64,000 bases of DNA from contig OU015567.1 of the NCBI GenBank assembly GCA_907165135.1, forward strand, positions 14,446,001 through 14,510,000, in the 5' to 3' direction. Numbering within the stretch: the first letter of the stretch is position 1; every line of letters starts with the position of its first letter. Position numbers and translations under genes: made by a program. Below, in pieces: positions 10,758-34,048 of this stretch. The notes beneath the pieces were generated by a model that was not told the origin of the DNA, did no database searches, and worked only from the letters and a program-made list of their open reading frames with translations. This stretch comes from Oikopleura dioica. Its lineage: Eukaryota; Animalia; Chordata.

Positions 10758-12996
10758 TCAAGAACTGTGGCGGAGTGCAATGAATGATTTGAAATCAGCT
10801 TTTGAAAAGCTCAATTTAGACATATTTTTCCATAGAGGTTCCTCGAGCTCTGGAATTTCGAAAGGTAGAGAAGCGCTGAGTAGATTAGATGGAGAGTGTG
10901 ACCCTTCCTCACTCGTGTCGAAGACAAGATCGAAGGATTCCGTACTAAAATGACTATTTCTTATTGTTCCTTGTCAAGGGAACTTACCAGTCTACTGTAA
11001 GATCACAGTACGCATCCAAGACGGCTGAGTCTAGCGAACACGAGCTTCGACCAAGTTGCTCCAATAAGAGCACTAGTTCTTGATTTTTCGGCGTGTTAAC
11101 CATTCTCAGATAATACAGGACTCGTTCGAGGATAACCCTTTCCGGCTTCAGCATGTAATATTTTGATGCCTCTAAGAATGATTAAAGCAGCTCGAATTTT
11201 CGATAAAATATACCTAGTAAAAAGATCCGAGTATTTCTGGAAAGAGTCCAAACATTATCTGACATTTCTGCTAAAATACCAATCACATTCAGCTCTGCCG
11301 AATGAGTGCGATGGAGAATTTGAAACACCGGAATAATTATGTTCTCGTCTATGTCTTCAAGGACAACTCGCATGGATTTCTCCAACACTCTTTGGGTTAT
11401 CAGTTTCATGAATGTTTCAGGGTCCCATGTTTTGAATTGGTCCAGGAAAAATGATTGAATAGTTGATTTACAAGTAGTTTGACAGTTGATAATTTCTTCG
11501 TCAACGAGAATATCACTGTCTTCTCCTGATTTATTGAATAATTCATCAGAAGTAATTGGCAGATAGGCCTCTTCCTCTGGTAACCGGGTTTTCTTAAAAT
11601 CAGGAGACAAAGCAGCTATTTCTTCGGTAGGGCCGAATTGAAGCATTAGTTTTATATACAAACGATAAATTTTTGAACGCAAGTTTTCAGTTTGATTGGT
11701 GATTTTTAGCCGTTGAAGAAGATGAAGATGCTGTGCGCCAAGATGAATAGCTAGTTGAAGGTCTTTTTGAAGATTTGAAGAGCGATTTCTGCTGGAGATA
11801 CTTTGTAGAAGATACTGGAAGATGTAACTGAAGGAGTCGCAAAAAGTGCTCAAATATATTTCCAAATGCGCGAGACATGAATCTTTCGTCAAAGTAGCCC
11901 GAAGAGATGCCAGCTTTCTCCAGTAGAGACGTATCATCGGTGTTGCAGCGTCCCGCTCCATCGGCCTCTTCGGGAATTCTATGTCCAGACTTTCCTGGCA
12001 GTTGAAAATCATCAGAATTGAAGATAAACAAGACTTTTGCAAATAAGCTTCAACAAGAGATAATGAAGATTTGAGCTGATCATGTACGTCTCGAATCCAG
12101 GAGGGAGGATCTTTGAGAGCTCTTCAAGTTTCTTGATCACTAGTCTCAAACTATTCGACAGAATGACCATATTTTTGGTCGTCGTCAAAGGTAGAACTTC
12201 TTTTATCATCCACGAAATACGCTTGCTCGCTTGAATATATTTAAAATCTTAAAAGACTGACTCTTCACCTGATAAAGCTGTCCTTTCGAGAGAAATATTT
12301 GCCCTCGAAAAAGCAATAGGTGAGATTTCATTCAAAAAGAATTCAAATCGCTTGAAAATTATTGGCGGAAAATCATCTGAAGAATTCTTGAACGTCTTGC
12401 AGTCATCCTGCAAGATCCAAAACTCGATTTCTTCTTCTGAAGAGCTTTCCAAAGGTACCAGTTTACTTATTGGCGTATAGTTCGGCGACTCTTCAGAAAA
12501 TATTGATATGACAGCGGCGAGTTGATACAGTTTTGCCTATGGGATGAGGCCGTTACCATCGACAGAAGCTGACAGTAGCTCTCCGATGGATTTAGTTTTG
12601 AACAGCTTGCTCTGCGATGAGAGCAATTTACTGGAAGCGGACTCGCTGAATTGAATGACGTGCTTCATGTAACTGTTAGATATCGGATTCGTTTTCGTAA
12701 AATCACTGGAAAAATGCTTCAGCACGAATTCATCCGTAACAAGCCAGAAGCCGACAAGAAGGAGAAAATATTCTGGAGCAGGGCGATCACGAATAGCATC
12801 AGCAATAACTCGCTCTCTACATCGCTGATAGACTTTGCAAACTTCGCCGTGAGGAGAAAATTGTTTCAGACCTTCAAGAATGACAAGGATCTCGAAGACA
12901 CGCTAAAAGCATTTATAAATTTATCCAAAACTTTAAAAAACGCACATGTTTTTCTGAAGCTCTTAAAATGCAGCCTAAGCTCGAGTTCGACAGGTC
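10758..12996 (-). pseudogene. KIAA0825-like (DUF4495) gene, 5'-truncated copy
   Basis: LEGLKQFSPHGEVCKVYQ, CLSSIL..SRNRSSNLQKDL and LSFSKADFKSFIALR resemble my recollection of KIAA0825 motifs. No native 5' exons; a BMS1 fragment lies directly upstream. Confidence 0.55.
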
Positions 12997-13019
12997 CTGC
13001 GGGATAAAAACTAACTGCT

Positions 13020-13447
13020 TCAAAACTTGTTCACGCCCGCAATCTGTTTCTGCTGATTTTTCATCTTCGTTTTGAAAGGAATATCCTTTTTCAGTTCCTT
13101 GGGCAACACCATTTTGTTGAACACGCGTTTCTTTCGTTGGACAGGTTTGTAAAGCGAGTCTGATCGCTGCTTGAGCTTGATGTCCCGCTCTTTTCGGATT
13201 TCTCCAGCGGTTTACAGTCCTTGCCAGTCGGATTTCTTTGACTCCTCTTATTACCAATAGAATCAGAGAGGCATTAAAAAGGATTAATTACCTGTAACAA
13301 GTTTGTGACCGGCAGATACATCGACGGAATCGCCAAGTTTACCCAAGTCTTGCAGAAGATAATATCAGAGTATTGCACTCGATCTTCGAAGGTAATTCTG
13401 ACAACGCCTTCCGGCTTTCTCAGTGACTTTTTGATGATGTCTCCGAT
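13020..13447 (-). pseudogene. BMS1: BMS1 C-terminal fragment with in-frame stop
   Basis: IIKKSLRKPEGVVRITFEDRVQYSDIIFCKTW..YLPVTNLLQ | 47-nt intron | SDWQGL*TAGEIR..RSDSLYKPVQRKKRVF..LPKELKKDIPFK. TAA at 13214-13212. Confidence 0.85.
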
Positions 13448-13460
13448 TCAAGAAACAGAG

Positions 13461-13556
13461 CAGTTTCCTGGGCGTGAGAAAGTTCGCCGCGCGGCCCGCT
13501 GATTGGCCGTCATTTCAGTTCAAAAAACTGTGGCGGTGGCCACGCCCAGGAAACTG
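13461..13556. repeat. 16-bp perfect inverted repeat enclosing a GC-rich core
   Basis: cagtttcctgggcgtg (13461-13476) and cacgcccaggaaactg (13541-13556); core contains gattgg (reverse CCAAT). Confidence 0.7.
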
Positions 13557-13812
13557 AACAACAGCGCCACTTTGAGCGCAGCGGATCAGAAACCAAGCCC
13601 GGCCGAGATGGAAAAAGATCACCAAGAGCTGAAAAGTTCGAAATGGCCGAAATTCATCATAATTGATAAAAAAAGGGAGGATTTAGGGGTTTTCGGACAC
13701 GGAGAATTTGAATTTGGGATAATTTTTTCAAATAAATCAAGATTTACGGAAAAAAAATAAGTTTTAAAATTGAAATCAAGGAGGAATTTGTAAAATGATT
13801 TATAAAAACAAA

Positions 13813-13855
13813 AGCCCCTCTGGTTGCTTCCTTTTCGGGAGTGACTGGAGGGGCT
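13813..13855. repeat. Small hairpin (agcccctc...gaggggct) with orientation-variable loop
   Basis: Same loop orientation at 13813 and 47429; opposite orientation at 26428 and 34841. Confidence 0.85.
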
Positions 13856-13965
13856 GAGTTTTTTTTTTTCATCAAAATAAGACTGTTTTCATGCTTTTTC
13901 AGACATAAAAGGCACAGTTTTTTCTAAAAGAAGTTTATTTTTAATGAGAAGAGCAGAATATAAGT

Positions 13966-14964
13966 TTAAATGTCGTCGACTTGGTCGCCATTGATCCAGG
14001 AGTGGAGGGTGATGGTGTAGCTGCTTGCTCGTGCGAATCTAGCATGGTTATCGCGGAAGTATTCCTGGATCTGGATCTTCTTAGAGGACGCGTGAACAGC
14101 CTCTCGCATCAGTCGATCAGCTTCGTCGTCGTTATTTCTTACCGCAGCCTTGACATCTTTTCGATGTTTGTCCAGCATGTGCTTGAGTAGCTCGGGCTCG
14201 TCCAGCATCAAAAAGCCGCACTTGCAGCAGTAGAAGTCGGCGAAGACGGCCTTGCAGACGTGGTTAAACCACAGTTCGTCCAGCTTGAAAAGAACAGCTT
14301 GCTCGTTGACGTCGTGAAAGATATCGGGGTTGATCAATATTGCAAGTTGCTTTCCAAGATCGCCCTCGTTCATCATGAGCTTTGTGCGGTCGAGATAATG
14401 AAGGGCAAAAGTTGAGTCTTGTTGAAAATTTGAAATCCTTCGTCGAAGATATTGCCTAGAAGTGCGAAGAAATCTAAAAGGATATGATTAAAATCTTTAA
14501 AGGAAAAATAAGAATCATTACCTCTCATGTTGCAATTCGTCGAATGTATATTGAGGCGTGTAGTCCCAGTTGTGATCATCAAGCCGGTGACGTATCGCTG
14601 CGATTGCTGCTTGTTTTGTGTGCCCAATCATCTCGGAAACGATGGTTCGGCCACCTTTGATAATTGAAAATAGAAGAGCAGGAAGAAGAAACTCGACGAT
14701 TTTCCAGGAGTTTACCTAAAGAAATTGTTATTTTGATAATTTATTATAAATTAAACTTACTTGTTGACTTTGACAGTTTGCCTTGTGCTTTTCCTTGAAT
14801 CCTTTGGCCGTCTGGACATTGTCAATTTCTTCTTGTCGTTCTCTTTGTCGACGCTCCCTTTGACGGCGAATTTCATTTCTCCGTCCATGTTCTAAACGGC
14901 CGTTACTATAGGGTTGATAACGGGCTGGTTGGGCGACTTGTTCTCTGTTTCTTAAAACAGGCAT
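13966..14964 (-). CDS. Orphan 301-aa protein with a single C2H2 zinc finger and a basic N-terminus
   Basis: Exons 14964-14761, 14715-14522 and 14473-13966 with 45- and 48-nt GT-AG introns join in frame (906 nt). Motif C-x2-C-x12-H-x4-H (CCKCGFLMLDEPELLKHMLDKH); RRQRERRQRER. Confidence 0.8.
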
Positions 14965-15179
14965 TCTTTTAAAATTGATTTGAACTTTTTTGAAAAAAAT
15001 TCGAAATAAATACGAGAACAACATCTAGCGCCACCTTTTTTTCTCTAAATTTGATCACCCACTAAGCATCTGATCTCCAACAGAGGAGCGCCCGCTACTA
15101 TTCATAAATTTTATTTTTGTAAAATCTGATTTTAAAAAAATATCTGTCCAATTAAAAGGAAAGAAAAATATTTATTGAT

Positions 15180-15625
15180 TAATTTTTTGTGGTAAACAAG
15201 CAATTAAATGGTATAATTTTAGCAAAAATTGATCAATTGAAACATAAGATATTCGCCATACAAAATCGGGCCTGCAAATTACCTTCAGTATTTTCCTTTA
15301 CGCTCTAACTCGAGTTTTTGTCATCCGATTTCAATGATAAATAGATATCCGAAGAGCTCATGTCCCACATTTATACATGATTTAAAAAATATTTGAAAAA
15401 AATCACTTCCTCAAATAATGCATTAATATTTGAATGTGGGAAAAGAGCTTTTCAAACATCTATTTATCATTAAAATCGGCTCATGAAAACTGGAGTTAGA
15501 GTGTGAAGGAAAATACTGAGGGAAATTTGCAGGCCCGATTTTGTATGGCGAATATCTTATGTTCCAATTGACTAAATTGTAAGAAAATTATACCATTGTA
15601 TTCATTTTTTACCACAATTTTATTT
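15180..15625. mobile_element. Palindromic (foldback/MITE-like) element
   Basis: 40-bp perfect inverted repeat 15241-15280 vs 15524-15563, with imperfect arms extending both ways. Ends and TSD not resolved. Confidence 0.7.
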
Positions 15626-15939
15626 TATTATTCAAATCATAGGCATATTCCAAAAGGGAGCGCCTTTTTTGAAACATGAATAATTAAAAATCCAATAATC
15701 TAGAATTGGAGGGGCGCGCCACTGTGGGACACCGTCTGATCAAAATCTACGACAGTCATGATAAAAAACATCGAACTTTTCCAAGGACTTATCGTTTCAG
15801 GGAGTTTTTACTTTTTGAGCCGAGATTCGCTTGATTTTTGCTCAGGTTTTCTTTTTAGGGCATGCTTGTCGCTAAAATTGTCAGGCATTGTTTTTTGTCA
15901 GAAAAAGACTGAGAGCCGCTAATTAAAAAAATGCAAAAA

Positions 15940-16150
15940 AAAATCTTCCTTGATTTCCAAGAAAAAGAAGTTTTTCAGCTGCCCCAAAGAACAAATCAGT
16001 TTTTCTATCTTCGGCGCGCCGCTGCGGGAGATCAGCTCAAGCTAGCCCCTTTTTCGAGTGATCCCCTGCAGCGGCGCGCCCAAGATCGAAAAAGTGATAT
16101 GTTTTTTGGAGGAGCTAAATAGCTGCTTTCTCGGAAATCGAGAGAAATCT
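15940..16150. repeat. Imperfect palindromic element
   Basis: cggcgcgccgctgc ... gcagcggcgcgcc core, with arms pairing out to about 100 bp each. Confidence 0.65.
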
Positions 16151-16950
16151 CTGTTTTTAATCTTTCACCAAAAGATAGGGGCAATTTTTTGAATCATTTT
16201 GAAAAACGGTAGTAACATCATTCACGCGCTTTGAGCAAACAAGGAAAAAAGGGTGATACCTTGGGAGAAAAGCCGAATGCTTCGTGCTGAGAAAAGAGGC
16301 ACATTTTGTGATTGAAAATGTCTCTAAAATCAGACGAATGCTGTCATGACAAGCTCTTGGGAATTTCGTAGGAGCTTGACCGGATGTTGTTTTCAGAGTA
16401 ACGTTTTTATTACTCCAAGAGTTAAATGTTCCAACTTTCAAGTATTTATTTAGTTACTGGCCAATTTTGACACGTAAAGTGCTTGGAAGCAGAATCACGA
16501 GGAGGGGGAGGAGCAGGAAGCGGCTGGGCGCTGCTATTATTTCCGACATGATAATGTTTATCCACGTGGCTTCTACTTTCGACAGGAGCATACTTTCCAG
16601 CAATAAAGCAATCATTTAAGAGTCTTTTATCGACAGAAAAACGTGGTGGGCGTGTAATTGTTGGCGCCAACAGCAACAAGTAGCCACTGAAATCACTGCT
16701 AGTTTTTTTCGTAATTATGCGCTTGTTTGGCACACGTGCTTCTAGGGCCACGAAAGCTCGATCTTTCATAAGATCAAAAGGGCACGTGAGGAGACTTCTT
16801 TCAAGGTCTGCAATCGCACTTTTAACTTTTTACCTCTCAAAAAAGGGAAAGAATCAATTATACTCCTCGTTGATTTCAAAGAAAAATATGCTCCGCTTCA
16901 TGATCGACTTGATCATCCAGTTCTTTGAGAACTTGAGTGTCTGATTGTCG

Positions 16951-17100
16951 AAAAGCCAGCCCCTCCGGCCATTTCCCCGCGGGGATTTGGCTGGGGGGGC
17001 TTTTTTACGTTTGGAGAGCCTTGGGCCGAAATTGACCAAACGTAGAAAAGCCCCTCCAGCCAAATCCCCTCGGGGAAATGGCCGGAGGGGCTGGCTTTTT
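16951..17100. repeat. GC-rich near-perfect hairpin (about 62-bp arms)
   Basis: aaaagccagcccctccggccatttcccc... vs ...ggggaaatggccggaggggctggcttttt. Confidence 0.85.
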
Positions 17101-17149
17101 AAAATCAAAGAAAGTGCGAAATAGTTTTTTTAATCTTAGCTGAGATTGA

Positions 17150-17469
17150 TATTTTACTTTTGCCCGAAACTGAGGACGATTTCTCAAATATTTTTAAAAG
17201 TCTGCGATCGTGAGAGCGTTGGCTATACCCTTAATAAAGTCCTGATGGAGTGAAAAATATCAGTGGCATACCCTTAATTTTTAAATTCGGGTTGATTAAA
17301 AAGTCGCTGATTTTATTTAATGGCGATTTTAATTTCAACCATATTTTCTTTTGCCCAAAGCTGAGGAAGATTTCTCAAATATTTTTAAAAGTCGGCGATC
17401 GTGAGAGCGTCGGCTATACCCTTAATAAAGTCCTGACGGAGTAAAAAATATCATTGGGCATACCCTTAT
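17150..17469. repeat. Two about 127-bp direct repeats, period about 191 bp, ending at a breakpoint
   Basis: atatttt..ctgagga..gatttctcaaatatttttaaaagtc..gatcgtgagagcgt..ggctatacccttaataaagtcctga at about 17150 and 17341. Confidence 0.85.
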
Positions 17470-17614
17470 TTTGCCAGATTTGCTCACAAGAAGCTCAGAA
17501 GTAGAAATAAAGTTCGATGTCGAGAGTTGATATAAATGCTCCTTTTATTAATGCCAGATGAATATGTAGTGTTAAAAGAAATGAAAGTGGGCTGATCTCA
17601 GCGTTGTATTAATT

Positions 17615-18613
17615 TTAATTCAACCAAGCCAAACCACATGTTTCGGGGTGGTTTAGAAAACATGCAGCTACTGTTCTTTCAAAGGGTAAGTAAATGATGT
17701 GAAAATATGATGATATGACGTACGTGGCGAGCTGAATTACCGACCGACCGAGAGCTTCAGAAATTGTGCTTTTCTTGGCTGAATTTCGCGACTCCACATC
17801 GTCTCGTCCTTGCGATGATTTCATGAATCCCCTGAATTTCGAGGAAATTTCGATTCACGACTTTCGAAACTTACGCGCTGGAGATGTTTCCAATATTGCC
17901 GGAGATATTGTAGAGGATCGCTCTTGAACGACGTCGCCATTCTTTGAGATCGCGCTAGAATCAACCTTTTAAAAGCGTTCCATTTTGAACTGTTTTACCC
18001 CCTCGCGCTCGCGGGCGAAATTGATCTTCGGATTCGACTTGGAAATGTCCTTGACGGATATGAGAAAGAAAACGACAGTGCCAGTCTCGTTTTTGATTGG
18101 CACTATAAAATCAGTTAGCTACTGTCAGTCCTTTCTTGGCAGCTACCGATATCAAGCTGGCAACTTTGACTTGTTTGATCACGGCTTTCGCGATCGCTGT
18201 AAAAGTGAAACTTGACTTCGACGCGGTACTCTTCCTTGTTTCGCAGGGCGCGCTCGATCCTCTCCTTGATGTCCTGCCGAGTGTCCTCGCCGTAGACGAA
18301 CCTTATCGCGCAAGATCGACGCATAACTGTTCGTGGGTTAATTCGCTAGTTGTGGAGTACCCTAAAGCTTGCTCCAGGAGCTAATTAACCGAGCCTTTGC
18401 AGCGCGGAAGGCCGCTGAGCTCGCAGAAGCCATCTGAGCAATAGACGATCGGGTACTGATCTGGAATCTGCGCATTTCCAAGCACGAAGTTTGAGTCTAA
18501 GAGACGATCATCCCTCTTTTCTAATTTTCGAGAAAAAACTTACGCGATCCGTCAAATCTCTCTGCGATCGTGTCAAGAAACGTGTTTTGCGGTGCGAGCA
18601 GGCCTTTTCTCAT
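17615..18613 (-). pseudogene. KCNH partial duplicate: exons 1-6 (PAS domain), broken in intron 6
   Basis: Homologous to about 808-1926, ends at junction 17492. Coding differences from the main copy are almost all synonymous. Confidence 0.85.
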
Positions 18614-19838
18614 TTCTCTGCCTAAGAAAAATTTTAACCCAATGAAAAATTTCTGCCAATTTTTTGGCCAAACTCTCAAGAAGGCATGGATACAGCCAAA
18701 ATGCCCTAGAAAACGATATTTACTGTGTTAACCTTCTGCACACTTGGGAAATTGGAAGCACAGCCGTGAGGCCATTCTATTTTGATTTTTCTTTTTTCAG
18801 TCGGCGGTGGGTACTCTCTTCAAAATTAATCAAAACTCTTCGCGTGGAACACGTGCAGCTGATTTATTCAAAACCTGACAGAATAATAAATTCCGTAAAC
18901 TACCCCAAAAATAAAACACTTAATACTTAGTTCTTCCAGTGCTCGGATTCACAAGCCTGTCTACTATTTACAGGAGACTGCTAAATTTGATAAAAATCGA
19001 ACTCATTTGCTCTTATAAGTCCAGACAGCTGTTTTGAGAGGTAACTTATTTTCTCTTGAAAAAAAAGAAGAAAAAAATTAGCTTTTGAAAAAAGGATGGC
19101 GAAAAGGATGGACTGGCAGTCAGCAATCAAAGTGAATGGATAAAGAGATTCTTAATTGTGAAAAGAAATCGGCCAGCATTTTAATAGACTATTCACGAGT
19201 TCCACTTTGCACATTTAAAGAGATCCTCGCGCGACGGGAAGCTTCCGCTCCTTTCAGAAGCGATTCTCTGGGGATGAACACTCAAATTCAATGCCTCGCG
19301 AGGCGAACTTCGCGGTACTTTTTTAAAGGAATATTTTTATTTTCGCTGAAATTATGATATCTTTTGAAAAATCTTTCCTTGGAAAACAAAAATTTAATTC
19401 AATGCAACTTTTCAACTTTAGGACCAACTGGTTGATCATTTTTCTTAAATTTCTCTTTGAAATTTTTTCTCAAAAAAGTCGAAAAATATTTGAAGCATAT
19501 TTTCAGATCAGGCCTGGCTTGCTTAAAATATCCCGGTAGCCGAATCGGCGGATCATTCCCAAGTTCGTTAAACGCATCATTAAACCGCATTAACTGTACT
19601 TCCAATTTTGCCCGTGGATGACTTACTCTTTTATAAATTCGCTTCCATGGGTTCTTTTTCAATTTTCAATTTGCAAGTTCTCGTTTTCAAGTTCACATTT
19701 GGCGCTGCGTTTTGTCTTCCTTTGCTGGCTATTAAAATTCAGCAGCGAAAAAACGCGAGCCAGAGGAAGATCCAAAGGATGGCGCTAGATGCGCCCAAAT
19801 AATGCCTCTTTTGCAATTACGATCCTCCTCCCCATATC

Positions 19839-20788
19839 TAGGGTAAATCACAAATATTTGAGCTCTTATTTGGACTTTGTAGAAGAGGCATACAATATCT
19901 TTTTATAATCCCCAGAAGCTGAGGATCATTTTGACTATTGATAGTGGGGGGTCATCTCGTACCCTGAGGGCATTTTGGTACCCCGGAAGTCCCAAAATAT
20001 GGCCAACTTCGGAAATTCAAATTTTTGAGGCCGTAACTAAGCTTTTTAGACTGAGCTATCCATACCAGCTTGTAGCTCAGGCTCTGACAGTCATTTTGAG
20101 GGGTAGAAAAATATGTCCCGGGCTACTCTAGAAAGTGGTGGAGGTGGTGCAAAGCTGGGTCAAGACCGGAAGTCAAGCTAAAATGAACTCTTATGTGATT
20201 TTAATGCAGTAACACTTTGAAAAAGCAACTGTAAATACATAATTGGTCACCCGAGGTCAACTTGGGGTCACTCGGGGTCATTTAAGGTCAAGATTTTTAA
20301 AAAAATACGTCTTTAATAAAAAACACCCCCAACTTGACCCTAGATGACCCCAAGTAACCCCAACTTGACCTCTGGTGACCAATTATGTATTTACAGTTGC
20401 TTTTTTAAAGTGTTACTGTATTTAAATCAGATAAGAGTTCATTTTAGCTGGATTTCCGGTCTTGACCCCAGCTTTGCACCACCTCCACCACTTTCTAGAG
20501 TAGCCCGGGACATACTTTTTTACCCCTCAAAATGACCGTCAGAGCCTGAGCTACAAGCTGGTATAGATAGCTCCGTCAAAAAAGCTTAGTTACGGCCTCG
20601 AAAATTCGAATTTCCGAAGTTGGCCACATTTTGGGACTTTCGGGGTACCAAAATGCCCTCAGGGTACGAGATGACCCCCCACTATCAATAGTCAAAATGA
20701 TCCTCAGCTTCTGGGGATTATAAAAAGGTATTATATGCCTACTCTACTTAGCAAGAAAAAAAGTGGAAAATATTAGTGATTTACCCTA
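19839..20788. mobile_element. Non-autonomous hAT-like foldback element (950 bp)
   Basis: TIR tagggtaaatcac(a/t)aatatt; 8-bp TSD cccatatc (19831-19838, 20789-20796). Empty sites near 3128 and 55491. The whole element is an imperfect palindrome. TAGGG termini plus an 8-bp TSD are typical of hAT. Confidence 0.92.
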
Positions 20789-21950
20789 CCCATATCCGAT
20801 AAAAATCGCGCCTCTGGGAATCGAACTGCTCGAATGATGATTTATTCTGCTTTTGCAGCCACTGCTGGAGAAAGTTACAGCTGCAATGAAAATTTAATTT
20901 TGAATTGTTACAGTAACTAATTTCAAGTCTAAGTTAAAAGCAGACATGCGGGAATAATATTTTGAAGGGTAGATTGAGGTCGGGAAAAGAAAGACGACAC
21001 AAAGTCGTCGCTTTTTATGGCAGGAAAATTACTGTATTCCGCGAGAATTCATTGTCAGTCGATAGACATTTTCGACGATTTGGTCGGCAACAATACTCGA
21101 TCTTTTTTGCTTGATATTGGACGGTACAAATCTGGGGAATTCAGTAACTACAGTATTTTTCACTGAAATGGGATGAGATGAACAAGCATGAGAATCCGGA
21201 CAATCCGCTATTTCTTTTTGCCAAATTCCGGATGATCCCGCCACGTTCATGTGCTCCTTCCTTTTTTTCGAAAAAATGCTGAAACAAGATCCCGATTTTC
21301 ATAATCATCGATAATCCCCTTTCAACGAGTTCAGATTTGAACGACGAAAGCCCACTATTTGACAGCCGACCGCATTTTTGGAAGCCTTTCGGATCATTTT
21401 GGAATAAGTTAGTGCCTTTGACAAGGTAAAATCTGAACTTTCCGTAGGATTCGTCTGACTACCAGTCAAAAGAAGAAGAATTCGCTCTTACAATCAACAA
21501 AATCAACACTTGCAATCAAGGAGAAATCAAGGCGATGGAAGATTCCCTGTGAAAGGTAATCGGAATTAAATTAATCCCATTTGGCTAGAGGTGGCTTCTG
21601 AAATTGAGGCTGCGGCAGGTATCTAATTGCGGCGGCGGCTGTTTATTTATAATCGAATATTCATCCCAGCAAAGTCTTTCTCGAGTTAACACAAATAAAC
21701 CTGCCACTGTTTATATGCACGGACAGACTGCAAGCGAACATTCTTCCTCGCTATCTGACAAGAAAACAAGTGCTATTTTGAATTTGCATCGATGATGTTC
21801 TCAGGTGAGCTCAGAATTCATCTGTTCTCGAAGGTTCGCAAATGAAGCTTTTTATTAAGAGCGAAAAGATTTATTGAACAGAAAAGTTGAATCAGGAATC
21901 AAATCAATTGAAGAACTGCGAAATAAAGAAGCAAAGGAGTTGAATAACAA

Positions 21951-23286
21951 TCACTCAAGCTCAGATAGACAGAAGTACGATTTCTGAGTTCCCTTGAAAA
22001 TAATAACAAACGATCTTGGTGTAGTTATTATACCTTTCTTGTTGTAGAGCGGGAAGCAACCATAGACGCAAATTTGGCATGTTCGATCGTCGTTTTCTGC
22101 GTCTTGGTAAGCGAGTAAGAAAAGGCGCCAACGAATGAGTCTCCAGCGCCGGTCGTGTCGACCACGTCTACTTTTTCAACAACTGGGTGCAATGTCAGCT
22201 CTCCTTCGCCTAAAAATTCATCATTTTTTAAGCAACAATCAAAATCTAGACACTGACTTTTGACGGCAAATCCGTCTCCACCGAGAGTGACAATTACACT
22301 TTTGAGTTTGTATTTCTCCTGTAGAGTTGTCGCCGCGTCTTCAATAGTTTCTTTTCCACTTAGTTCCAGAGCTTCTGTCTGATTCGCGATGAGAAAGTCG
22401 ATCTGTTCAGAGAACGTCTCGAAGTCTTCCCTGCTCGGGCAAGGCGCGGGTGAGTAGATTGTCTTTGCTCCAGCTGCTCTTCCAAGTTGTAGAGCTCTTT
22501 TGGTCGTACTCACAGGAATCTCGTTTTGGCAAATGACGATTTTCGTGCCCTTGAAAGCTTCCTCATCTAAATCTTGAGAATCTTGAAATCTTTGATTGAG
22601 TAATCGACCGGTGCATATTCGAAGCAAGTTGAAGTTTTTAGCGAGAAATATGTCGACAAGAGGAAATACCAATGTTTGAAATGAAAAAGGCGGACAGTAG
22701 TTTATGAATGATTCAAGGAAGTTTCTTCTCGCGCGAAAACGGAGATTTTTGGCAACGTCTTTCGCTAATTCAGCTTCGTCTATCACTATCTGAGCAAACT
22801 CGTGCAGAAATAGGGCTGATTCTTTCGATTGTGACACATTCGCGAACGTGAGATCAAGTAACGCACAAGTCTTCTTGACATCTCTCTGGCGTAAAAGGCA
22901 ACAAGCGAGATTCTCCAAATTTTGCATAAAATTTTGATGCTTCAAATTCGTCGGTAAAGCTCCTTTATTTACATTTGCAAAGCGAGTTGGTAGATTCCAG
23001 ATAAAATTGAGGAAATCAACGAAGACTTTCTGCTCCACGCTACTTAGAGCTATTCTTTCAAGGACTTCGTATGATGAGCAGAAGCCAACGAAGTCGGATA
23101 AAACTGGAAAGATCAATGTCGAGTCGGCAAGAATATTCTTCAGAGAGCAAATGACTTGGATCATTTTCGCAGGAGAGGATGAAATAAGATCAGCGCAAAG
23201 TTTTTCCAGCGCGTCAGAGTCTGAGCTTTTCCCATTCTTTTTAATTCCAAAAAATGTTCCGGAAGTTTTGTCAAAACATCCAACAT
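21951..23286 (-). CDS. Chimeric TELO2(N-terminal)::RBKS(C-terminal) ORF, about 400 aa after splicing
   Basis: In-frame ...[25 protein letters not shown]...DTTGAGDSF...GTQKSYFCLSELE*. Start context and introns of both parents are retained. Confidence 0.75.
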
Positions 23287-23371
23287 TCTTATATTGGGCA
23301 TTATAAATTTAAGAAATAAATTATTAAAAGTAAAGATTGTTAAGAAAATAAGAAAGAAAGTTTTGTTTTTA

Positions 23372-25611
23372 TCAAGAACTGTGGCGGAGTGCAATGAATG
23401 ATTTGAAATCAGCTTTTGAAAAGCTCAATTTAGACATATTTTTCCATAGAGGTTCCTCGAGCTCTGGAATTTCGAAAGGTAGAGAAGCGCTGAGTAGATT
23501 AGATGGAGAGTGTGACCCTTCCTCACTCGTGTCGAAGACAAGATCGAAGGATTCCGTACTAAAATGACTATTTCTTATTGTTCCTTGTCAAGGGAACTTA
23601 CCAGTCTACTGTAAGATCACAGTACGCATCCAAGACGGCTGAGTCTAGCGAACACGAGCTTCGACCAAGTTGCTCCAATAAGAGCACTAGTTCTTGATTT
23701 TTCGGCGTGTTAACCATTCTCAGATAATACAGGACTCGTTCGAGGATAACCCTTTCCGGCTTCAGCATGTAATATTTTGATGCCTCTAAGAATGATTAAA
23801 GCAGCTCGAATTTTCGATAAAATATACCTAGTAAAAAGATCCGAGTATTTCTGGAAAGAGTCCAAACATTATCTGACATTTCTGCTAAAATACCAATCAC
23901 ATTCAGCTCTGCCGAATGAGTGCGATGGAGAATTTGAAACACCGGAATAATTATGTTCTCGTCTATGTCTTCAAGGACAACTCGCATGGATTTCTCCAAC
24001 ACTCTTTGGGTTATCAGTTTCATGAATGTTTCAGGGTCCCATGTTTTGAATTGGTCCAGGAAAAATGATTGAATAGTTGATTTACAAGTAGTTTGACAGT
24101 TGATAATTTCTTCGTCAACGAGAATATCACTGTCTTCTCCTGATTTATTGAATAATTCATCAGAAGTAATTGGCAGATAGGCCTCTTCCTCTGGTAACCG
24201 GGTTTTCTTAAAATCAGGAGACAAAGCAGCTATTTCTTCGGTAGGGCCGAATTGAAGCATTAGTTTTATATACAAACGATAAATTTTTGAACGCAAGTTT
24301 TCAGTTTGATTGGTGATTTTTAGCCGTTGAAGAAGATGAAGATGCTGTGCGCCAAGATGAATAGCTAGTTGAAGGTCTTTTTGAAGATTTGAAGAGCGAT
24401 TTCTGCTGGAGATACTTTGTAGAAGATACTGGAAGATGTAACTGAAGGAGTCGCAAAAAGTGCTCAAATATATTTCCAAATGCGCGAGACATGAATCTTT
24501 CGTCAAAGTAGCCCGAAGAGATGCCAGCTTTCTCCAGTAGAGACGTATCATCGGTGTTGCAGCGTCCCGCTCCATCGGCCTCTTCGGGAATTCTATGTCC
24601 AGACTTTCCTGGCAGTTGAAAATCATCAGAATTGAAGATAAACAAGACTTTTGCAAATAAGCTTCAACAAGAGATAATGAAGATTTGAGCTGATCATGTA
24701 CGTCTCGAATCCAGGAGGGAGGATCTTTGAGAGCTCTTCAAGTTTCTTGATCACTAGTCTCAAACTATTCGACAGAATGACCATATTTTTGGTCGTCGTC
24801 AAAGGTAGAACTTCTTTTATCATCCACGAAATACGCTTGCTCGCTTGAATATATTTAAAATCTTAAAAAGACTGACTCTTCACCTGATAAAGCTGTCCTT
24901 TCGAGAGAAATATTTGCCCTCGAAAAAGCAATAGGTGAGATTTCATTCAAAAAGAATTCAAATCGCTTGAAAATTATTGGCGGAAAATCATCTGAAGAAT
25001 TCTTGAACGTCTTGCAGTCATCCTGCAAGATCCAAAACTCGATTTCTTCTTCTGAAGAGCTTTCCAAAGGTACCAGTTTACTTATTGGCGTATAGTTCGG
25101 CGACTCTTCAGAAAATATTGATATGACAGCGGCGAGTTGATACAGTTTTGCCTATGGGATGAGGCCGTTACCATCGACAGAAGCTGACAGTAGCTCTCCG
25201 ATGGATTTAGTTTTGAACAGCTTGCTCTGCGATGAGAGCAATTTACTGGAAGCGGACTCGCTGAATTGAATGACGTGCTTCATGTAACTGTTAGATATCG
25301 GATTCGTTTTCGTAAAATCACTGGAAAAATGCTTCAGCACGAATTCATCCGTAACAAGCCAGAAGCCGACAAGAAGGAGAAAATATTCTGGAGCAGGGCG
25401 ATCACGAATAGCATCAGCAATAACTCGCTCTCTACATCGCTGATAGACTTTGCAAACTTCGCCGTGAGGAGAAAATTGTTTCAGACCTTCAAGAATGACA
25501 AGGATCTCGAAGACACGCTAAAAGCATTTATAAATTTATCCAAAACTTTAAAAAACGCACATGTTTTTCTGAAGCTCTTAAAATGCAGCCTAAGCTCGAG
25601 TTCGACAGGTC
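23372..25611 (-). pseudogene. KIAA0825-like 5'-truncated copy
   Basis: Near-identical to 10758-12996. Confidence 0.55.
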
Positions 25612-25634
25612 CTGCGGGATAAAAACTAACTGCT

Positions 25635-26062
25635 TCAAAACTTGTTCACGCCCGCAATCTGTTTCTGCTGATTTTTCATCTTCGTTTTGAAAGGAATATC
25701 CTTTTTCAGTTCCTTGGGCAACACCATTTTGTTGAACACGCGTTTCTTTCGTTGGACAGGTTTGTAAAGCGAGTCTGATCGCTGCTTGAGCTTGATGTCC
25801 CGCTCTTTTCGGATTTCTCCAGCGGTTTACAGTCCTTGCCAGTCGGATTTCTTTGACTCCTCTTATTACCAATAGAATCAGAGAGGCATTAAAAAGGATT
25901 AATTACCTGTAACAAGTTTGTGACCGGCAGATACATCGACGGAATCGCCAAGTTTACCCAAGTCTTGCAGAAGATAATATCAGAGTATTGCACTCGATCT
26001 TCGAAGGTAATTCTGACAACGCCTTCCGGCTTTCTCAGTGACTTTTTGATGATGTCTCCGAT
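25635..26062 (-). pseudogene. BMS1: BMS1 fragment copy
   Basis: Matches 13020-13447, including the TAA. Confidence 0.8.
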
Positions 26063-26578
26063 TCAAGAAACAGAGCAGTTTCCTGGGCGTGAGAAAGTTC
26101 GCCGCGCGGCCCGCTGATTGGCCGTCATTTCAGTTCAAAAAACTGTGGCGGTGGCCACGCCCAGGAAACTGAACAACAGCGCCACTTTGAGCGCAGCGGA
26201 TCAGAAACCAAGCCCGGCCGAGATGGAAAAAGATCACCAAGAGCTGAAAAGTTCGAAATGGCCGAAATTCATCATAATTGATAAAAAAAGGGAGGATTTA
26301 GGGGTTTTCGGACACGGAGAATTTGAATTTGGGATAATTTTTTCAAATAAATCAAGATTTACGGAAAAAAAATAAGTTTTAAAATTGAAATCAAGGAGGA
26401 ATTTGTAAAATGATTTATAAAAACAAAAGCCCCTCCAGTCACTCCCGAAAAGGGAGCAATCGGAGGGGCTGAGTTTTTTTTTCATCAAAATAAGACTGTT
26501 TTCATGCTTTTTCAGACATAAAAGGCACAGTTTTTTCTAAAAGAAGTTTATTTTTAATGAGAAGAGCAGAATATAAGT

Positions 26579-27444
26579 TTAAATGTCGTCGACTTGGTCG
26601 CCATTGATCCAGGAGTGGAGGGTGATGGTGTAGCTGCTTGCTCGTGCGAATCTAGCATGGTTATCGCGGAAGTATTCCTGGATCTGGATCTTCTTAGAGG
26701 ACGCGTGAACAGCCTCTCGCATCAGTCGATCAGCTTCGTCGTCGTTATTTCTTACCGCAGCCTTGACATCTTTTCGATGTTTGTCCAGCATGTGCTTGAG
26801 TAGCTCGGGCTCGTCCAGCATCAAAAAGCCGCACTTGCAGCAGTAGAAGTCGGCGAAGACGGCCTTGCAGACGTGGTTAAACCACAGTTCGTCCAGCTTG
26901 AAAAGAACAGCTTGCTCGTTGACGTCGTGAAAGATATCGGGGTTGATCAATATTGCAAGTTGCTTTCCAAGATCGCCCTCGTTCATCATGAGCTTTGTGC
27001 GGTCGAGATAATGAAGGGCAAAAGTTGAGTCTTGTTGAAAATTTGAAATCCTTCGTCGAAGATATTGCCTAGAAGTGCGAAGAAATCTAAAAGGATATGA
27101 TTAAAATCTTTAAAGGAAAAATAAGAATCATTACCTCTCATGTTGCAATTCGTCGAATGTATATTGAGGCGTGTAGTCCCAGTTGTGATCATCAAGCCGG
27201 TGACGTATCGCTGCGATTGCTGCTTGTTTTGTGTGCCCAATCATCTCGGAAACGATGGTTCGGCCACCTTTGATAATTGAAAATAGAAGAGCAGGAAGAA
27301 GAAACTCGACGATTTTCCAGGAGTTTACCTAAAGAAATTGTTATTTTGATAATTTATTATAAATTAAACTTACTTGTTGACTTTGACAGTTTGCCTTGTG
27401 CTTTTCCTTGAATCCTTTGGCCGTCTGGACATTGTCAATTTCTT
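26579..27444 (-). pseudogene. C2H2 orphan gene copy lacking start of exon 1
   Basis: Matches 13966 to about 14831; broken at the junction with the phosphatase gene. Confidence 0.8.
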
Positions 27445-28115
27445 ATATCTTCGATTCGATCCAACCAGAGGTCTTCTTGATAACAATATGATGGAATGCC
27501 GTATTCTTCATCGTCTCCTTAGCTTCTGCCTTGTACTCGCCAAAGTCGAAATTCTTGAGTCCAAGGAAATGTCTGAAGAGCATTTTCAACAAGAAACCAT
27601 GCGCGAAAATCAGTATTGTCTTGTCAACTTTGGCCTCTTCGATAAGCGACCGGAGAAAATTCACAGCTCTGTATTTGACGTCGGCGTCTGCTTCCATTTC
27701 CGGGCTGTTCCAGTCAACTTCGCTCCTCAACTTGCCCTCGAGTTTGCCCATTCCCTTTTCTTTGAGCAAGTCGTCGCAGATTATGCGTTCTTCCCCGATG
27801 TCATTCGTAGCGATTTTAGCTGTTTCCAGAGCGCGAGAAAGGGGCGAGGAGTAAACGAGATCAGCCTTGGGAAGAACTTTCGCCTCGGCCAAGCGCTTTG
27901 CTCATTTGCAGATCAGAAATAAACTGAAAATAAACTTGGCGTTCATGAGTGGAAGCACTTTCTTGATCTCTGCCCATTTCGCTCAAAGGAATATCGAGCT
28001 AAAAATCTTTACTTGCAGAAATGACTATTGCGTCTTTTACCTGCCCTTGCAAAATGCCAGCTTTATTGTACGATGTTTCGCCGTGCCGGATCAAGTACAA
28101 ATTTAGGACAACCAT
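27443..28115 (-). CDS. TIGAR-like phosphatase, C-terminally truncated (ends WIESKI*)
   Basis: Matches 6424-7091; about the last 25 aa replaced by a junction-derived TAA. Confidence 0.75.
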
Positions 28116-28181
28116 TCTAGAGCACTTGATATTTGTGAGTTTTGCATTTAAAAGACAACTTGAACTGTATTTAAAATTAAC

Positions 28182-29462
28182 TCAGTTTGCGCAAGCTCGA
28201 ATAGCTTTCTCATCGTCGTCAAGCCACTGTAAGACTTGTGGAGTAAAATAAGAAAGAATCATTTCTGCGCCAGCTCTTCTACACGCCGTTAGACTTTCGA
28301 GCACTCCCTTCTTCAAATCAATCGCTCCAGCTTTGGCGCCGTGGACGAGTAGCGCGTACTCGCCAGACACCTGATAAGCAGCCACTGGAAAATTCGGAAA
28401 CTCTTGCTTCGTTCGGTAGATAATATCTTTTATCGGTTTTCATGATTTACAAATTGGATATTTAATTTATAGCGAGAACAGTCCCTAGATAGGCACCGGC
28501 CGGTTTTACCATTAAAATATCTGCACCTTCGTTCGCATCTCTATCGTTGCATCTCATCGCCAAACTTGATGCTCCTGGTGGAAGCTGAAAAATAAAGTAG
28601 AAAATTAGCTAATGTGAATGCTAACCTGATAATTTCTTCTATCGCCAAATTTAGGAGCAGAACCAGCTGCTTCTCTGAAAGGCCCATAAAATGCTTCACC
28701 CGAGTTATTATCAATTCCGCTCTATTTTCAAAGCTTACTCTTTAGTTATTCGATATTTAACCCGCAACAGAACAAAATTTAGCCGAGTAGGACATCACGG
28801 CAACTCGTGAGCCAAGCTTGAGTTCCCGAAGTCTGCTTTTGATCGCTCCTATCCTTCCATCCATCATATCCGAAGGAGCCACGCAGTCAGCACCTGCGAG
28901 TCCATAATTGCCTGCGATCTCGGCTAGTCTATCGATGGACTTCTGGTTGTTCATGCGATCATCTTCGAAAATCCCACAGTGCCCGGTTTCGGAGAAGGGA
29001 CAAATACAAACGTCAGCCGCGACCCACAGCTATCATTACTGTAATTTACAATTATAATGCATAGATAATGGGCGTTTATATGAATAATAACTAAAAACTG
29101 ACCTGTGGATATTTTGACTTGATCAATTTAATAGCTTCAATGGTAGGGCCCGTCTCGCAATCTGCGCTAGATCCGACAGCATCTTTAGTCGATTTGACAT
29201 CTACGCCAAAAATGATAACTGAGCGAAGACCTTTGGCGACTTGTTGGGAAAGGAAGGGAATGAGATTGTTGATTCCATAGCGACTCACTCCGGGCAGCGC
29301 ATTTATCGGTTCCAGGGCGTCAGGGGAGCTATTCGTTACGAAAAGCGGCAGCATAAGATTTACAGGCGAGATTTTGGAGTCAAATGCAGCGAGCTCTCGC
29401 AAAACTCCATGGCCATATGAAGAATGCAGAATGTGTCCGACTGGTGGCTCGTAACCGCTCAT
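28182..29462 (-). CDS. ALAD: ALAD copy 2
   Basis: Near-identical to 7158-8438. Confidence 0.95.
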
Positions 29463-29503: not shown

Positions 29504-31701
29504 CTAGAATAGATTCAAAAGGTCAGTCGCAGCAAGTGAAAGGCGTGGGCAATCAAGCGATTGGCATTCTTCTAGCCACATTTTCCAAGTGATGTCCATC
29601 CAGATTTCTTGTTTAGTTGAAGCGATGCTCAGCAGACAAACTTGGTAAGATTTGATTATTACAAGTTTCAAATTCGTGTCATCTAAAGATAGAGTTTTAT
29701 AAGAAAAGCGCTGACAAATTACCAATTCTTCTAAAAGTCGCGAGAAAATCTATGGAAGGAAGGACGTATTTCTCGATTTCGGGAATATTATCCAAGAGAG
29801 AAATGATCTGGCCGACGAATGCAATCATTCTTGACAAGACGTCTTTATCGCACGTCTCCAACATCAACGTTCGTTTATTCGAATCCCAGCTGCGCAAGAA
29901 AGGAAAAAGAAAATATCCAGCGGCAGGATAAAACCGAGACTTGAGCATCTTCTCGCTTTTTGGGCGGCTTCCCCAGCGCCGTGATTGTGATTCAACTTTT
30001 GCGGAAAGCGCTAATTTTTCAAAGGCGATCTCTTCTTCAAGTTCTTCGAAGGGAAGGTCCGCCAATTGCTTTACGGCCTTCGATAGAGAGGCAAGAATGA
30101 TCTGCCGTTTTTCTAGAGGCATTGACTCGGCATAAAATTCACCTAAAAATTAGAAAATGTTCGTACCAAAAAACTATTATTACCAACAATCGCAGGAGCA
30201 TAAAATTCCGGAGCCACAACTGCCAACGATTCTAGAGCATCACCCACGAGAGCAGCATCATTATCGTTAACAATTTCAAAATAAACGATCCCTTTCAAAA
30301 TCTCTTCCACAAGCTCCTTCGAAGAAACCTGATTGACCTTTGCTAAATACGGAATTGTTTCCAGCGCGGCGAGTTTGCGTTTAGTCTTCTCCGTTTTTGA
30401 CATTGATTGGGGTAGATTTCTCTCGACCAAAATTCCACTGGCTTCCATAAGAAAGCGGGGACTGTATTTTGAAAGGTTCGGCGTTTCGAATTCGAATTGT
30501 TCGAATTCCAAGTCGTCGGAATCAAGACTTTCTCGATCATCATCATCATCATCATCGTCACAGTTTCCAGCATTGATTCTTTCATCTTCGACTTTTTGTT
30601 GGTTACCGTTCAAGAATTCGATTGTTCGCTCTCTGCTATCTTCGTGAACTTTATTTTGATCCGCTTGAAGGTCTTTATTCGTGATTGGAAAGTCAAGTTT
30701 GGCCTCTGAATCAAATACTGAGATGATCTTCTTGGCAGAAAGCATTCCAATATCTCGATTGTCGGACGCCGACTGAGCAAAGTGGTTTTTGAAGCCCAAA
30801 GAAACAGTGTTGATAATCTCCAATCGCATTTCATCCGGACATTTAGGAAGATAGTCGACTGAGAAGGCAATGATTTTCGAAACTTGGATTCTTTGATCGA
30901 CAGAAACCTTGATAACAATGTTTTCGTCCGCCCAGTAGTCAACTAAATGTTTCCATGTCTCCAGACCTGCGATAGCAACAATTCGTCCCATGTGAAACTG
31001 GCCATTTTGATTGAGTAATCGACCGGTGCATATTCGAAGCAAGTTGAAGTTTTTAGCGAGAAATATGTCGACAAGAGGAAATACCAATGTTTGAAATGAA
31101 AAAGGCGGACAGTAGTTTATGAATGATTCAAGGAAGTTTCTTCTCGCGCGAAAACGGAGATTTTTGGCAACGTCTTTCGCTAATTCAGCTTCGTCTATCA
31201 CTATCTGAGCAAACTCGTGCAGAAATAGGGCTGATTCTTTCGATTGTGACACATTCGCGAACGTGAGATCAAGTAACGCACAAGTCTTCTTGACATCTCT
31301 CTGGCGTAAAAGGCAACAAGCGAGATTCTCCAAATTTTGCATAAAATTTTGATGCTTCAAATTCGTCGGTAAAGCTCCTTTATTTACATTTGCAAAGCGA
31401 GTTGGTAGATTCCAGATAAAATTGAGGAAATCAACGAAGACTTTCTGCTGCACGCTACTTAGAGCTATTCTTTCAAGGACTTCGTATGATGAGCAGAAGC
31501 CAACGAAGTCGGATAAAACTGGAAAGATCAATGTCGAGTCGGCAAGAATATTCTTCAGAGAGCAAATGACTTGGATCATTTTCGCAGGAGAGGATGAAAT
31601 AAGATCAGCGCAAAGTTTTTCCAGCGCGTCAGAGTCTGAGCTTTTCCCATTCTTTTTAATTCCAAAAAATGTTCCGGAAGTTTTGTCAAAACATCCAACA
31701 T
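29504..31701 (-). CDS. TELO2: TELO2 copy, intact frames
   Basis: 478-aa exon ORF 30143-31579 plus 29697-30122 and the terminal exon. Confidence 0.87.
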
Positions 31702-31786
31702 TCTTATATTGGGCATTATAAATTTAAGAAATAAATTATTAAAAGTAAAGATTGTTAAGAAAATAAGAAAGAAAGTTTTGTTTTTA

Positions 31787-34025
31787 TCAAGAACTGTGGC
31801 GGAGTGCAATGAATGATTTGAAATCAGCTTTTGAAAAGCTCAATTTAGACATATTTTTCCATAGAGGTTCCTCGAGCTCTGGAATTTCGAAAGGTAGAGA
31901 AGCGCTGAGTAGATTAGATGGAGAGTGTGACCCTTCCTCACTCGTGTCGAAGACAAGATCGAAGGATTCCGTACTAAAATGACTATTTCTTATTGTTCCT
32001 TGTCAAGGGAACTTACCAGTCTACTGTAAGATCACAGTACGCATCCAAGACGGCTGAGTCTAGCGAACACGAGCTTCGACCAAGTTGCTCCAATAAGAGC
32101 ACTAGTTCTTGATTTTTCGGCGTGTTAACCATTCTCAGATAATACAGGACTCGTTCGAGGATAACCCTTTCCGGCTTCAGCATGTAATATTTTGATGCCT
32201 CTAAGAATGATTAAAGCAGCTCGAATTTTCGATAAAATATACCTAGTAAAAAGATCCGAGTATTTCTGGAAAGAGTCCAAACATTATCTGACATTTCTGC
32301 TAAAATACCAATCACATTCAGCTCTGCCGAATGAGTGCGATGGAGAATTTGAAACACCGGAATAATTATGTTCTCGTCTATGTCTTCAAGGACAACTCGC
32401 ATGGATTTCTCCAACACTCTTTGGGTTATCAGTTTCATGAATGTTTCAGGGTCCCATGTTTTGAATTGGTCCAGGAAAAATGATTGAATAGTTGATTTAC
32501 AAGTAGTTTGACAGTTGATAATTTCTTCGTCAACGAGAATATCACTGTCTTCTCCTGATTTATTGAATAATTCATCAGAAGTAATTGGCAGATAGGCCTC
32601 TTCCTCTGGTAACCGGGTTTTCTTAAAATCAGGAGACAAAGCAGCTATTTCTTCGGTAGGGCCGAATTGAAGCATTAGTTTTATATACAAACGATAAATT
32701 TTTGAACGCAAGTTTTCAGTTTGATTGGTGATTTTTAGCCGTTGAAGAAGATGAAGATGCTGTGCGCCAAGATGAATAGCTAGTTGAAGGTCTTTTTGAA
32801 GATTTGAAGAGCGATTTCTGCTGGAGATACTTTGTAGAAGATACTGGAAGATGTAACTGAAGGAGTCGCAAAAAGTGCTCAAATATATTTCCAAATGCGC
32901 GAGACATGAATCTTTCGTCAAAGTAGCCCGAAGAGATGCCAGCTTTCTCCAGTAGAGACGTATCATCGGTGTTGCAGCGTCCCGCTCCATCGGCCTCTTC
33001 GGGAATTCTATGTCCAGACTTTCCTGGCAGTTGAAAATCATCAGAATTGAAGATAAACAAGACTTTTGCAAATAAGCTTCAACAAGAGATAATGAAGATT
33101 TGAGCTGATCATGTACGTCTCGAATCCAGGAGGGAGGATCTTTGAGAGCTCTTCAAGTTTCTTGATCACTAGTCTCAAACTATTCGACAGAATGACCATA
33201 TTTTTGGTCGTCGTCAAAGGTAGAACTTCTTTTATCATCCACGAAATACGCTTGCTCGCTTGAATATATTTAAAATCTTAAAAGACTGACTCTTCACCTG
33301 ATAAAGCTGTCCTTTCGAGAGAAATATTTGCCCTCGAAAAAGCAATAGGTGAGATTTCATTCAAAAAGAATTCAAATCGCTTGAAAATTATTGGCGGAAA
33401 ATCATCTGAAGAATTCTTGAACGTCTTGCAGTCATCCTGCAAGATCCAAAACTCGATTTCTTCTTCTGAAGAGCTTTCCAAAGGTACCAGTTTACTTATT
33501 GGCGTATAGTTCGGCGACTCTTCAGAAAATATTGATATGACAGCGGCGAGTTGATACAGTTTTGCCTATGGGATGAGGCCGTTACCATCGACAGAAGCTG
33601 ACAGTAGCTCTCCGATGGATTTAGTTTTGAACAGCTTGCTCTGCGATGAGAGCAATTTACTGGAAGCGGACTCGCTGAATTGAATGACGTGCTTCATGTA
33701 ACTGTTAGATATCGGATTCGTTTTCGTAAAATCACTGGAAAAATGCTTCAGCACGAATTCATCCGTAACAAGCCAGAAGCCGACAAGAAGGAGAAAATAT
33801 TCTGGAGCAGGGCGATCACGAATAGCATCAGCAATAACTCGCTCTCTACATCGCTGATAGACTTTGCAAACTTCGCCGTGAGGAGAAAATTGTTTCAGAC
33901 CTTCAAGAATGACAAGGATCTCGAAGACACGCTAAAAGCATTTATAAATTTATCCAAAACTTTAAAAAACGCACATGTTTTTCTGAAGCTCTTAAAATGC
34001 AGCCTAAGCTCGAGTTCGACAGGTC
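31787..34025 (-). pseudogene. KIAA0825-like 5'-truncated copy
   Basis: Near-identical to 10758-12996. Confidence 0.55.
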
Positions 34026-34048
34026 CTGCGGGATAAAAACTAACTGCT

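Follow-up and report, generated by a model that had tools for sequence, protein, structure and literature searches.

A TELO2–ribokinase fusion gene at a duplication junction in Oikopleura dioica, a probable by-product of nested duplication and end joining

The window analyzed here is a 64,000-nt stretch of the Oikopleura dioica genome, and it contains two copies, 21 kb apart, of a gene that fuses the front third of TELO2 to the back 60% of a ribokinase (RBKS). We consider this to be most likely a real, young and polymorphic fusion, selectively neutral or slightly deleterious, to which nested duplication together with end joining gave rise as a by-product. TELO2 codons 1–232, a 15-nt filler and the last 177 codons of the PfkB ribokinase follow each other in frame on the minus strand (Table 1). 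An earlier note on this DNA had reported an in-frame TELO2::ribokinase ORF present twice, and it lies where the note had placed it, on the minus strand; the 15-nt insert that the note had described at the junction, giving RFQDSQ, proves on alignment to the parental copies to be a filler unlike either of them. The TELO2 part is 232 aa long (231 in copy 2) and not ~218 aa as given there. In copy 1 a 378-aa ORF at 22028–23164 (minus strand) runs from TELO2 (...RLLNQ) across RFQDSQ and then through the ribokinase DTTGAGDSF. Base-level alignment against the parental copies in the window extends TELO2 identity to ...CTCAATCAAA and has RBKS identity begin at AAGATTTAGATG, and it agrees with the self-BLAST boundaries at 22575/22591 and 43575/43591, which mark the junction to the base.

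Table 1. Features of the chimeric genes, their parental genes and the repeat units (window coordinates).
Feature	Coordinates	Strand	Remarks
Chimeric TELO2::RBKS gene, copy 1	21951–23286	-	
TELO2-derived 5′ part of exon 1, 232 codons	22591–23286	-	1-nt homopolymer shortfall at 23238–23242 as assembled
15-nt filler, GATTTCAAGATTCTC	22576–22590	-	RFQDSQ encoded with the edge codons; unlike either parent
RBKS-derived part of exon 1	22258–22575	-	From RBKS residue 126 (DLDEEAFK...); NEIP motif inside
GT-AG intron, 48 nt, phase 1	22210–22257	-	Stop-free
RBKS exon with DTTGAGDSF	22034–22209	-	
GT-AG intron, 41 nt	21993–22033	-	
RBKS terminal exon, GTQKSYFCLSELE and stop	21951–21992	-	AATAAA signals beyond at 21870–21875 and 21851–21856
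Chimeric gene, copy 2	42951–44284	-	Filler 43576–43590; TELO2 part 231 aa
Intact TELO2 in unit V1	8478–10672	-	Site homologous to the TELO2-side breakpoint of the chimera, 9978
Other intact TELO2 copies	29504–31701; 50503–52699; older copy near 60.9–63.05 kb		
Intact ribokinase copy a	4302–5358	-	Site homologous to the RBKS-side breakpoint, 4927
Intact ribokinase copy b	56645–57709	-	RBKS part of public model P0002 / g8082
21-kb repeat unit V1	6420–27444		6420–22575, filler and second copy of 9978–14831
Further units	V2 27444–48445; V3 48445–54297		V3 partial

The two copies of the chimera differ solely by 2 nt in the length of one T run. As assembled, copy 2 is a single uninterrupted ORF that starts at the TELO2 ATG at 44284, its run lengths compensating each other, whereas copy 1 meets a stop 41 codons after the TELO2 ATG and is open from the internal ATG at 23164. 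The reading frame of about 400 aa without stops that had been proposed is therefore continuous in copy 2 but interrupted in copy 1, and the predicted spliced product would comprise ~415 aa, made up of 232 TELO2 residues, RFQDSQ and 177 ribokinase residues. The frame break of copy 1 is a 5-A run at 23238–23242; both the parental copy at 52699 and a contig of the sequencing run X1 have six A here. More generally, the near-identical TELO2 5′ copies (23238–23254, 10624–10640, 44236–44253 and 52651–52667) differ in nothing but the length of two homopolymer runs, one of A and one of T, and these differences look like residual Nanopore errors; they break ORFs, with the result that public models begin at an internal Met (g8070 at 23164, and a TELO2 model at 30991).

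As regards splicing, the earlier description of the introns as parental was borne out for the two RBKS introns and the terminal exon, both introns being spliced alike in the public models P0001 and P0002. Because the 48-nt intron is open in all of its length, the raw ORF continues across it and gains a 16-aa insert that no homologue shares; the protein searches reported here used ORF translations. The same description erred in placing a 41-nt first intron in the TELO2 part, where it would have mended the early stop of copy 1, and this candidate was rejected because the stretch is conserved coding sequence, coding for VLTKLPEHFLELK and aligning with P0121 and P0122, two Oikopleura relatives of TELO2, at their N-termini. 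The motif checks agreed in all three respects with the claim that DSDD and the sugar-binding half are gone and that DTTGAGDSF is kept: across the whole window GGKGAN occurs in the two parental RBKS copies only, GGKGAN and DSDD are missing from both chimeras, and DTTGAGDSF is retained in them, where it aligns with the invariant DTxGAGD anion-hole/catalytic motif of homologues.

The N-terminal 320 aa of the parental TELO2 were modeled with AF2 (pLDDT 78.6, pTM 0.78), and in an exhaustive VIA search with this model the best three among 48,161 PDB chains are all TELO2/Tel2. Two are human TELO2, 7ole_K at Z 15.2 over 284 aligned residues and 7f4u_A at Z 14.1; the third is yeast Tel2, 3o4z_A, at Z 11.9, and the chain ranked fourth has Z 9.2. 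The modeled fold, which is the N-domain solenoid of TELO2/Tel2 as seen in the human (7OLE, 7F4U) and yeast (3O4Z) structures, confirms the TELO2 identity. Foldseek against the PDB with the TELO2 model returned generic ARM/HEAT repeats only. In Pfam, no family matched the window's own TELO2 ORF pieces, and the relatives P0121 and P0122 fell below threshold on TELO2_ARM (E=0.038 and 0.0039, cut-off 27 bits). When the PDB was searched with a profile, human TELO2 chains alone came up, at marginal E-values of 0.04–0.11 and with the matched region downstream of the breakpoint. All four parental TELO2 copies carry the acidic LDSDDLEFE and the C-terminal domain, and both chimeras end at TELO2 residue 232 without them; unlike TELO2/Tel2, the chimera breaks off two-thirds of the way through the N domain and so has neither the DSDD linker nor any of the C-terminal part. 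TELO2 contacts TTI1 chiefly through its N-terminal domain (PMC8278493), and about two-thirds of this TTI1-binding domain make up the TELO2 part of the chimera. Because the domain is the main TTI1 interface, a dominant-negative effect is conceivable, and a dominant-negative TELO2 role for the chimera would at this point be speculation. A literature search retrieved no papers on Oikopleura together with TELO2.

On the ribokinase side, Pfam PfkB matches the chimera with E=2e-27 at profile positions 107–292 of 302 only, and the parental ribokinase matches solved ribokinases at E ~1e-49. The chimera enters at residue 126 of the 302 residues of the parental RBKS. Its last 177 residues, including GTQKSY, are typical of PfkB-family ribokinases (5ZWY, 5BYC, 1GQT), but unlike these enzymes it is without GSLNVDQ, GGKGANQ and the lid strands, so that its PfkB domain is incomplete, lacking the N-terminal GG motif and the lid. 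Half a PfkB domain is not known to fold as a unit of its own. The suggestion of an inactive kinase fusion fits this anatomy, in which the first 125 RBKS residues are absent.

The two halves also differ in age. The RBKS side of the chimera is 3–5% different from both intact ribokinase copies, with 54 mismatches to copy b, its nearest relative, and 88 to copy a over 1.8 kb, and with 36 sites unique to the chimera; by its sequence the fragment is an old paralogue or a divergent allele, of which the window contains no intact counterpart. Alleles specific to the chimera include those at 22136, 22292, 22306, 22337, 22340, 22342, 22395, 22421 and 22514. The TELO2 side, compared with its sister copies, has 0–1 mismatch in 810 nt and 1–15 mismatches in 4.85 kb (99.7–99.98% identity). 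Since the TELO2 side is near-identical and the RBKS side 3–5% diverged, the join appears to be young and the ribokinase fragment an older paralogue. The word 'young' in the earlier note therefore suits the junction, the filler of which is also absent from run X5 (see below), but not the ribokinase fragment. Five nonsynonymous and five synonymous changes fall on the RBKS branch of the chimera, against 6 and 17 on the parental branches, a difference that is not significant at these few sites, and the 5 versus 5 changes give no sign of constraint on the branch leading to the chimera.

The window has six TELO2 5′ halves, four of which continue as TELO2 and two as chimeras, and four RBKS 3′ halves, of which two belong to the parental genes and two to the chimeras; the parents are retained, with four TELO2 and two RBKS genes intact within the window. 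In the intact order, the genes run head to tail on the minus strand as TELO2, ALAD, a His_Phos_1 gene, EF-Ts and RBKS, and the chimera links the 5′ part of the first gene of this cluster to the 3′ part of its last. It retains ~4.1 kb upstream of the start codon, including a divergent promoter region of ~107 bp, as well as the RBKS 3′ end with its AATAAA signals. Seen in this way, the chimera equals the cluster minus its interior, and it might have come from an old internal deletion of the TELO2-ALAD-His_Phos-EF-Ts-RBKS cluster within one paralogous unit, with the TELO2 side homogenized later by gene conversion, an origin with which the age of the 3–5% diverged RBKS fragment agrees. Such a deletion is unlikely, since the 4.85-kb near-identical tract ends exactly at the filler, so that gene conversion would have had to stop right at the junction, whereas a duplication join accounts for the end of the tract without an additional event.

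The course of events that we favor is a germline rearrangement on chr2 of the Okinawa lineage that would have arisen during nested segmental duplication, when the TELO2 promoter and first 232 codons were copied and linked, in the same orientation, to an older ribokinase paralogue at a point midway along it. End-joining repair would have made this link, leaving the 15-nt filler and keeping the frame by chance, and the 21-kb unit with the junction would have been duplicated afterwards, giving two chimeras that are identical bar the one T-run length. The caveat in the earlier note that the intact frame may be due to chance was correct, the probability of an in-frame, stop-free join being roughly 0.25–0.3; with both copies from one event and the frame within chance, the frame itself is no evidence of selection.

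The filler occurs nowhere in the window but at the two junctions (22576–22590 and 43576–43590), with ~0.04 chance matches expected. Considered as a possible templated insertion of the polymerase-theta type, it shows only 5–7-nt matches to its flanks (AAGATT, GATTT, TTTCAAG), with AAGATT(T) from the adjacent RBKS flank reiterated three times within 30 nt, and no longer template for it was found in the window. The other unit joins, J2 (27444 and 48445) and J3 (54297), have small filler or microhomology. At J3 (54288–54297) the partial third unit, at a point equivalent to 12270, is joined to the 18604/1917-equivalent with microhomology of at most 1 nt, and the sequence immediately after the join is of the 18604 type, not the 1917 type. 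J2 truncates the 3′ end of His_Phos_1, the ORF at 27443–27892 ending in ...GWIESKI and a stop, 24 residues short of the intact copy at 6347–6868. The public 616-aa ALAD+His_Phos_1 model (26579–29462) crosses J2 into an unrelated 136-aa ORF (26579–26989), and J2 in this model is a possible second chimera.

According to Deng et al. 2018, as cited in PMC11067885, O. dioica is without c-NHEJ and repairs induced breaks by MMEJ. The scars of MMEJ or alternative end joining in this species likewise comprise short fillers or microhomology with pieces of the flanks reiterated; unlike those scars, the joins described here belong to a natural germline rearrangement with no induced break, and templating is confined to matches of 5–7 nt. 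Chimeric genes at duplication breakpoints are a known class, for example in Drosophila yakuba (Rogers et al. 2017, PMC5460883), and like the D. yakuba chimeras the present gene takes its promoter and 5′ part from one gene and its 3′ part from another, in the same orientation and at a duplication junction, with the parents intact and with an allele that is young and polymorphic. Unlike the D. yakuba cases, it is found in an operon-rich tunicate, its parents stand first and last among five genes clustered on one strand, it lies within nested duplications with three distinct joins, and it is known here from DNA.

Evidence on the junction that is independent of the long-read assembler comes from the Logan contigs of run X1, which may derive from the assembly's own individual. 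Contigs of this run match the chimera-specific RBKS alleles at 0 mismatches. One contig stops at 22575 and another, 739 nt long, begins at 22591, the loose ends at these points being parental continuations, and among the contigs listed none bridges the filler. In the bin 22556–22609 the depth is 51.3, of which the listed and parental contigs give ~34, rising to ~46 when a bridging contig is added; this excess implies a bridging contig, and the junction is supported in this run by depth arithmetic together with the contig ends. In X1, copy a has a depth of 5.99, copy b of 13.1 and the chimera type of 11.4–14.7, and the shared 5′ part of TELO2 reaches 36.6; these values would fit one haplotype with two copies of the chimera and another of simpler structure. 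In run X5, from another study, the contigs listed sum exactly to the depth of 95.8, with none of it on the filler, and all chimera-specific sites read the a or b allele, which indicates that the chimera is absent from X5, bearing in mind that rare variants are dropped from contigs. The 37-nt junction also had no match in a metagenome scan, which is uninformative.

The assembly itself was made with Canu, Racon, Pilon and HaploMerger2 from Nanopore reads of median 840 bp, from an individual with ~3.6% heterozygosity, and because a heterozygous array was merged by HaploMerger2, the copy number and the status of the copies as alleles or paralogues are uncertain. The four 4.85-kb copies (9978–14831, 22591–27444, 31006–35859 and 43591–48445) pair out of register: 22591–27444 matches 31006–35859, and 9978–14831 matches 43591–48445, with 1 mismatch each, and the two copies within one unit have 15. 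Such a pattern could stem from gene conversion, from the presence of two alleles or from a mosaic in the assembly. With such reads and such merging, the junction, or its second copy alone, could have come from mis-assembly or haplotype merging, as the out-of-register similarity, the near-identical copies that differ chiefly in homopolymer lengths and the lack of a bridging contig among those listed would also allow. An artefact of this kind is improbable nonetheless, as assemblers do not make up a 15-nt filler foreign to both parents, and the X1 contigs stop and start exactly at this filler while the excess depth over it needs the bridging contig; in addition, the chimera-type RBKS depth is about twice that of copy a, which fits two chimera copies.

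With regard to expression, we infer from the duplicated promoter region and the retained RBKS 3′ end that transcription from the TELO2 promoter is plausible, and a transcript would probably be terminated at the RBKS 3′ end. Two oligo-dT RNA-seq runs, X11 and X12, which probably come from a different cryptic lineage, had 0 and 1 read over 1.6 kb that includes the parental-identical TELO2, so they say nothing either way on the chimera. Copy 1 is already annotated in GenBank, with wrong splicing, as g8070 (P0001, Oidioi.mRNA.OKI2018_I69.chr2.g8070, 215 aa), and the locus of this model corresponds exactly to window positions 11951–33164, which places the window on OKI2018_I69 chr2, OU015567.1, at about 14,446,001–14,510,000. 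Besides starting at the internal ATG, the model has a 477-nt GT-AG 'intron' at 22567–23043 that removes the junction and most of TELO2. This intron could in principle reflect a real spliced transcript; as evidence of transcription it was set aside, having no parental counterpart, and it could stem from repeat-masking hints. In a collection of 5.8 billion sequences no protein with both halves was found other than the g8070 model of the present locus.

The earlier note had proposed structure prediction as one check, and the AF2 model of copy 2 consists of two uncoupled modules (pTM 0.52). In the final ~40 TELO2 residues pLDDT is 54–72, against 82–93 for the same residues in the parental model, a comparison that is only suggestive because the alignments behind the two models differ. 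The predicted product would have, on the TELO2 side, about two-thirds of the N-terminal solenoid, with neither the DSDD/PIH1D1 linker nor the C-terminal domain, and, on the RBKS side, a PfkB fold reduced to its C-terminal half with the ATP site, with neither the lid nor the ribose-binding GGKGAN. As this product is without essential parts of both parents, the gene is most likely a neutral or slightly deleterious fusion and not a working new gene.

A functional new gene, expressed and kept by selection, in which the TELO2 fragment binds TTI1 and titrates or modulates the TTT co-chaperone or the fusion takes on a new role, would suit the intact frame, the retained promoter and 3′ end, the TTI1 interface of the TELO2 N-terminal domain, the presence of two copies and the existence of a public gene model. 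It is very unlikely, given that a frame like this is no more than chance would allow, that a single event accounts for both copies, that the RNA runs yielded next to nothing, on the parental-identical TELO2 as well, that the only sequence with both halves in the large collection is the locus's own model, that the fusion is absent from X5 and that both modules are cut within a domain. The most far-reaching version of this idea, a segregating and expressed gene, born in one step by end joining and then amplified, whose TTI1-binding TELO2 part and ATP-binding half-kinase would act on TTT/PIKK maturation as a dominant-negative or a regulator, is likewise very unlikely. Any bearing of the fusion on TELO2 or ribokinase biology would depend on expression or selection.

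As a probable by-product of duplication, the fusion illustrates, in a form that can be cleanly dissected, how two unrelated genes may become fused in frame in a single step through duplication plus error-prone end joining, at a polymorphic locus with three distinct joins and in a species with extreme genome scrambling and without c-NHEJ. The array also brings out problems in the OKI2018_I69 annotation, in which homopolymer errors truncate models, operon neighbors are merged and the fusion is labeled as an ordinary PfkB protein. The merged models of same-strand neighbors are EF-Ts+RBKS (P0002, 542 aa) and ALAD+His_Phos_1 (616 aa; L001 3703–6586). The intergenic gaps in the cluster are small, which leads the public annotation to fuse neighbors into single models, and since EF-Ts has its own stop at 5391, the EF-Ts+RBKS model is a typical operon mis-annotation.

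Two further repeat structures were observed in the array. A foldback element of ~950 bp is present at 19839–20788 and at 40855–41792, where it splits segments that are contiguous at 3125–3136 in the older copy, and it matches itself in reverse at 88–89% and the copy in the other unit in reverse at 93.6%. Each 21-kb unit also has a self-complementary (palindromic) stretch of ~430 bp, at 15187–15617 and 36216–36644, with ~81% identity.
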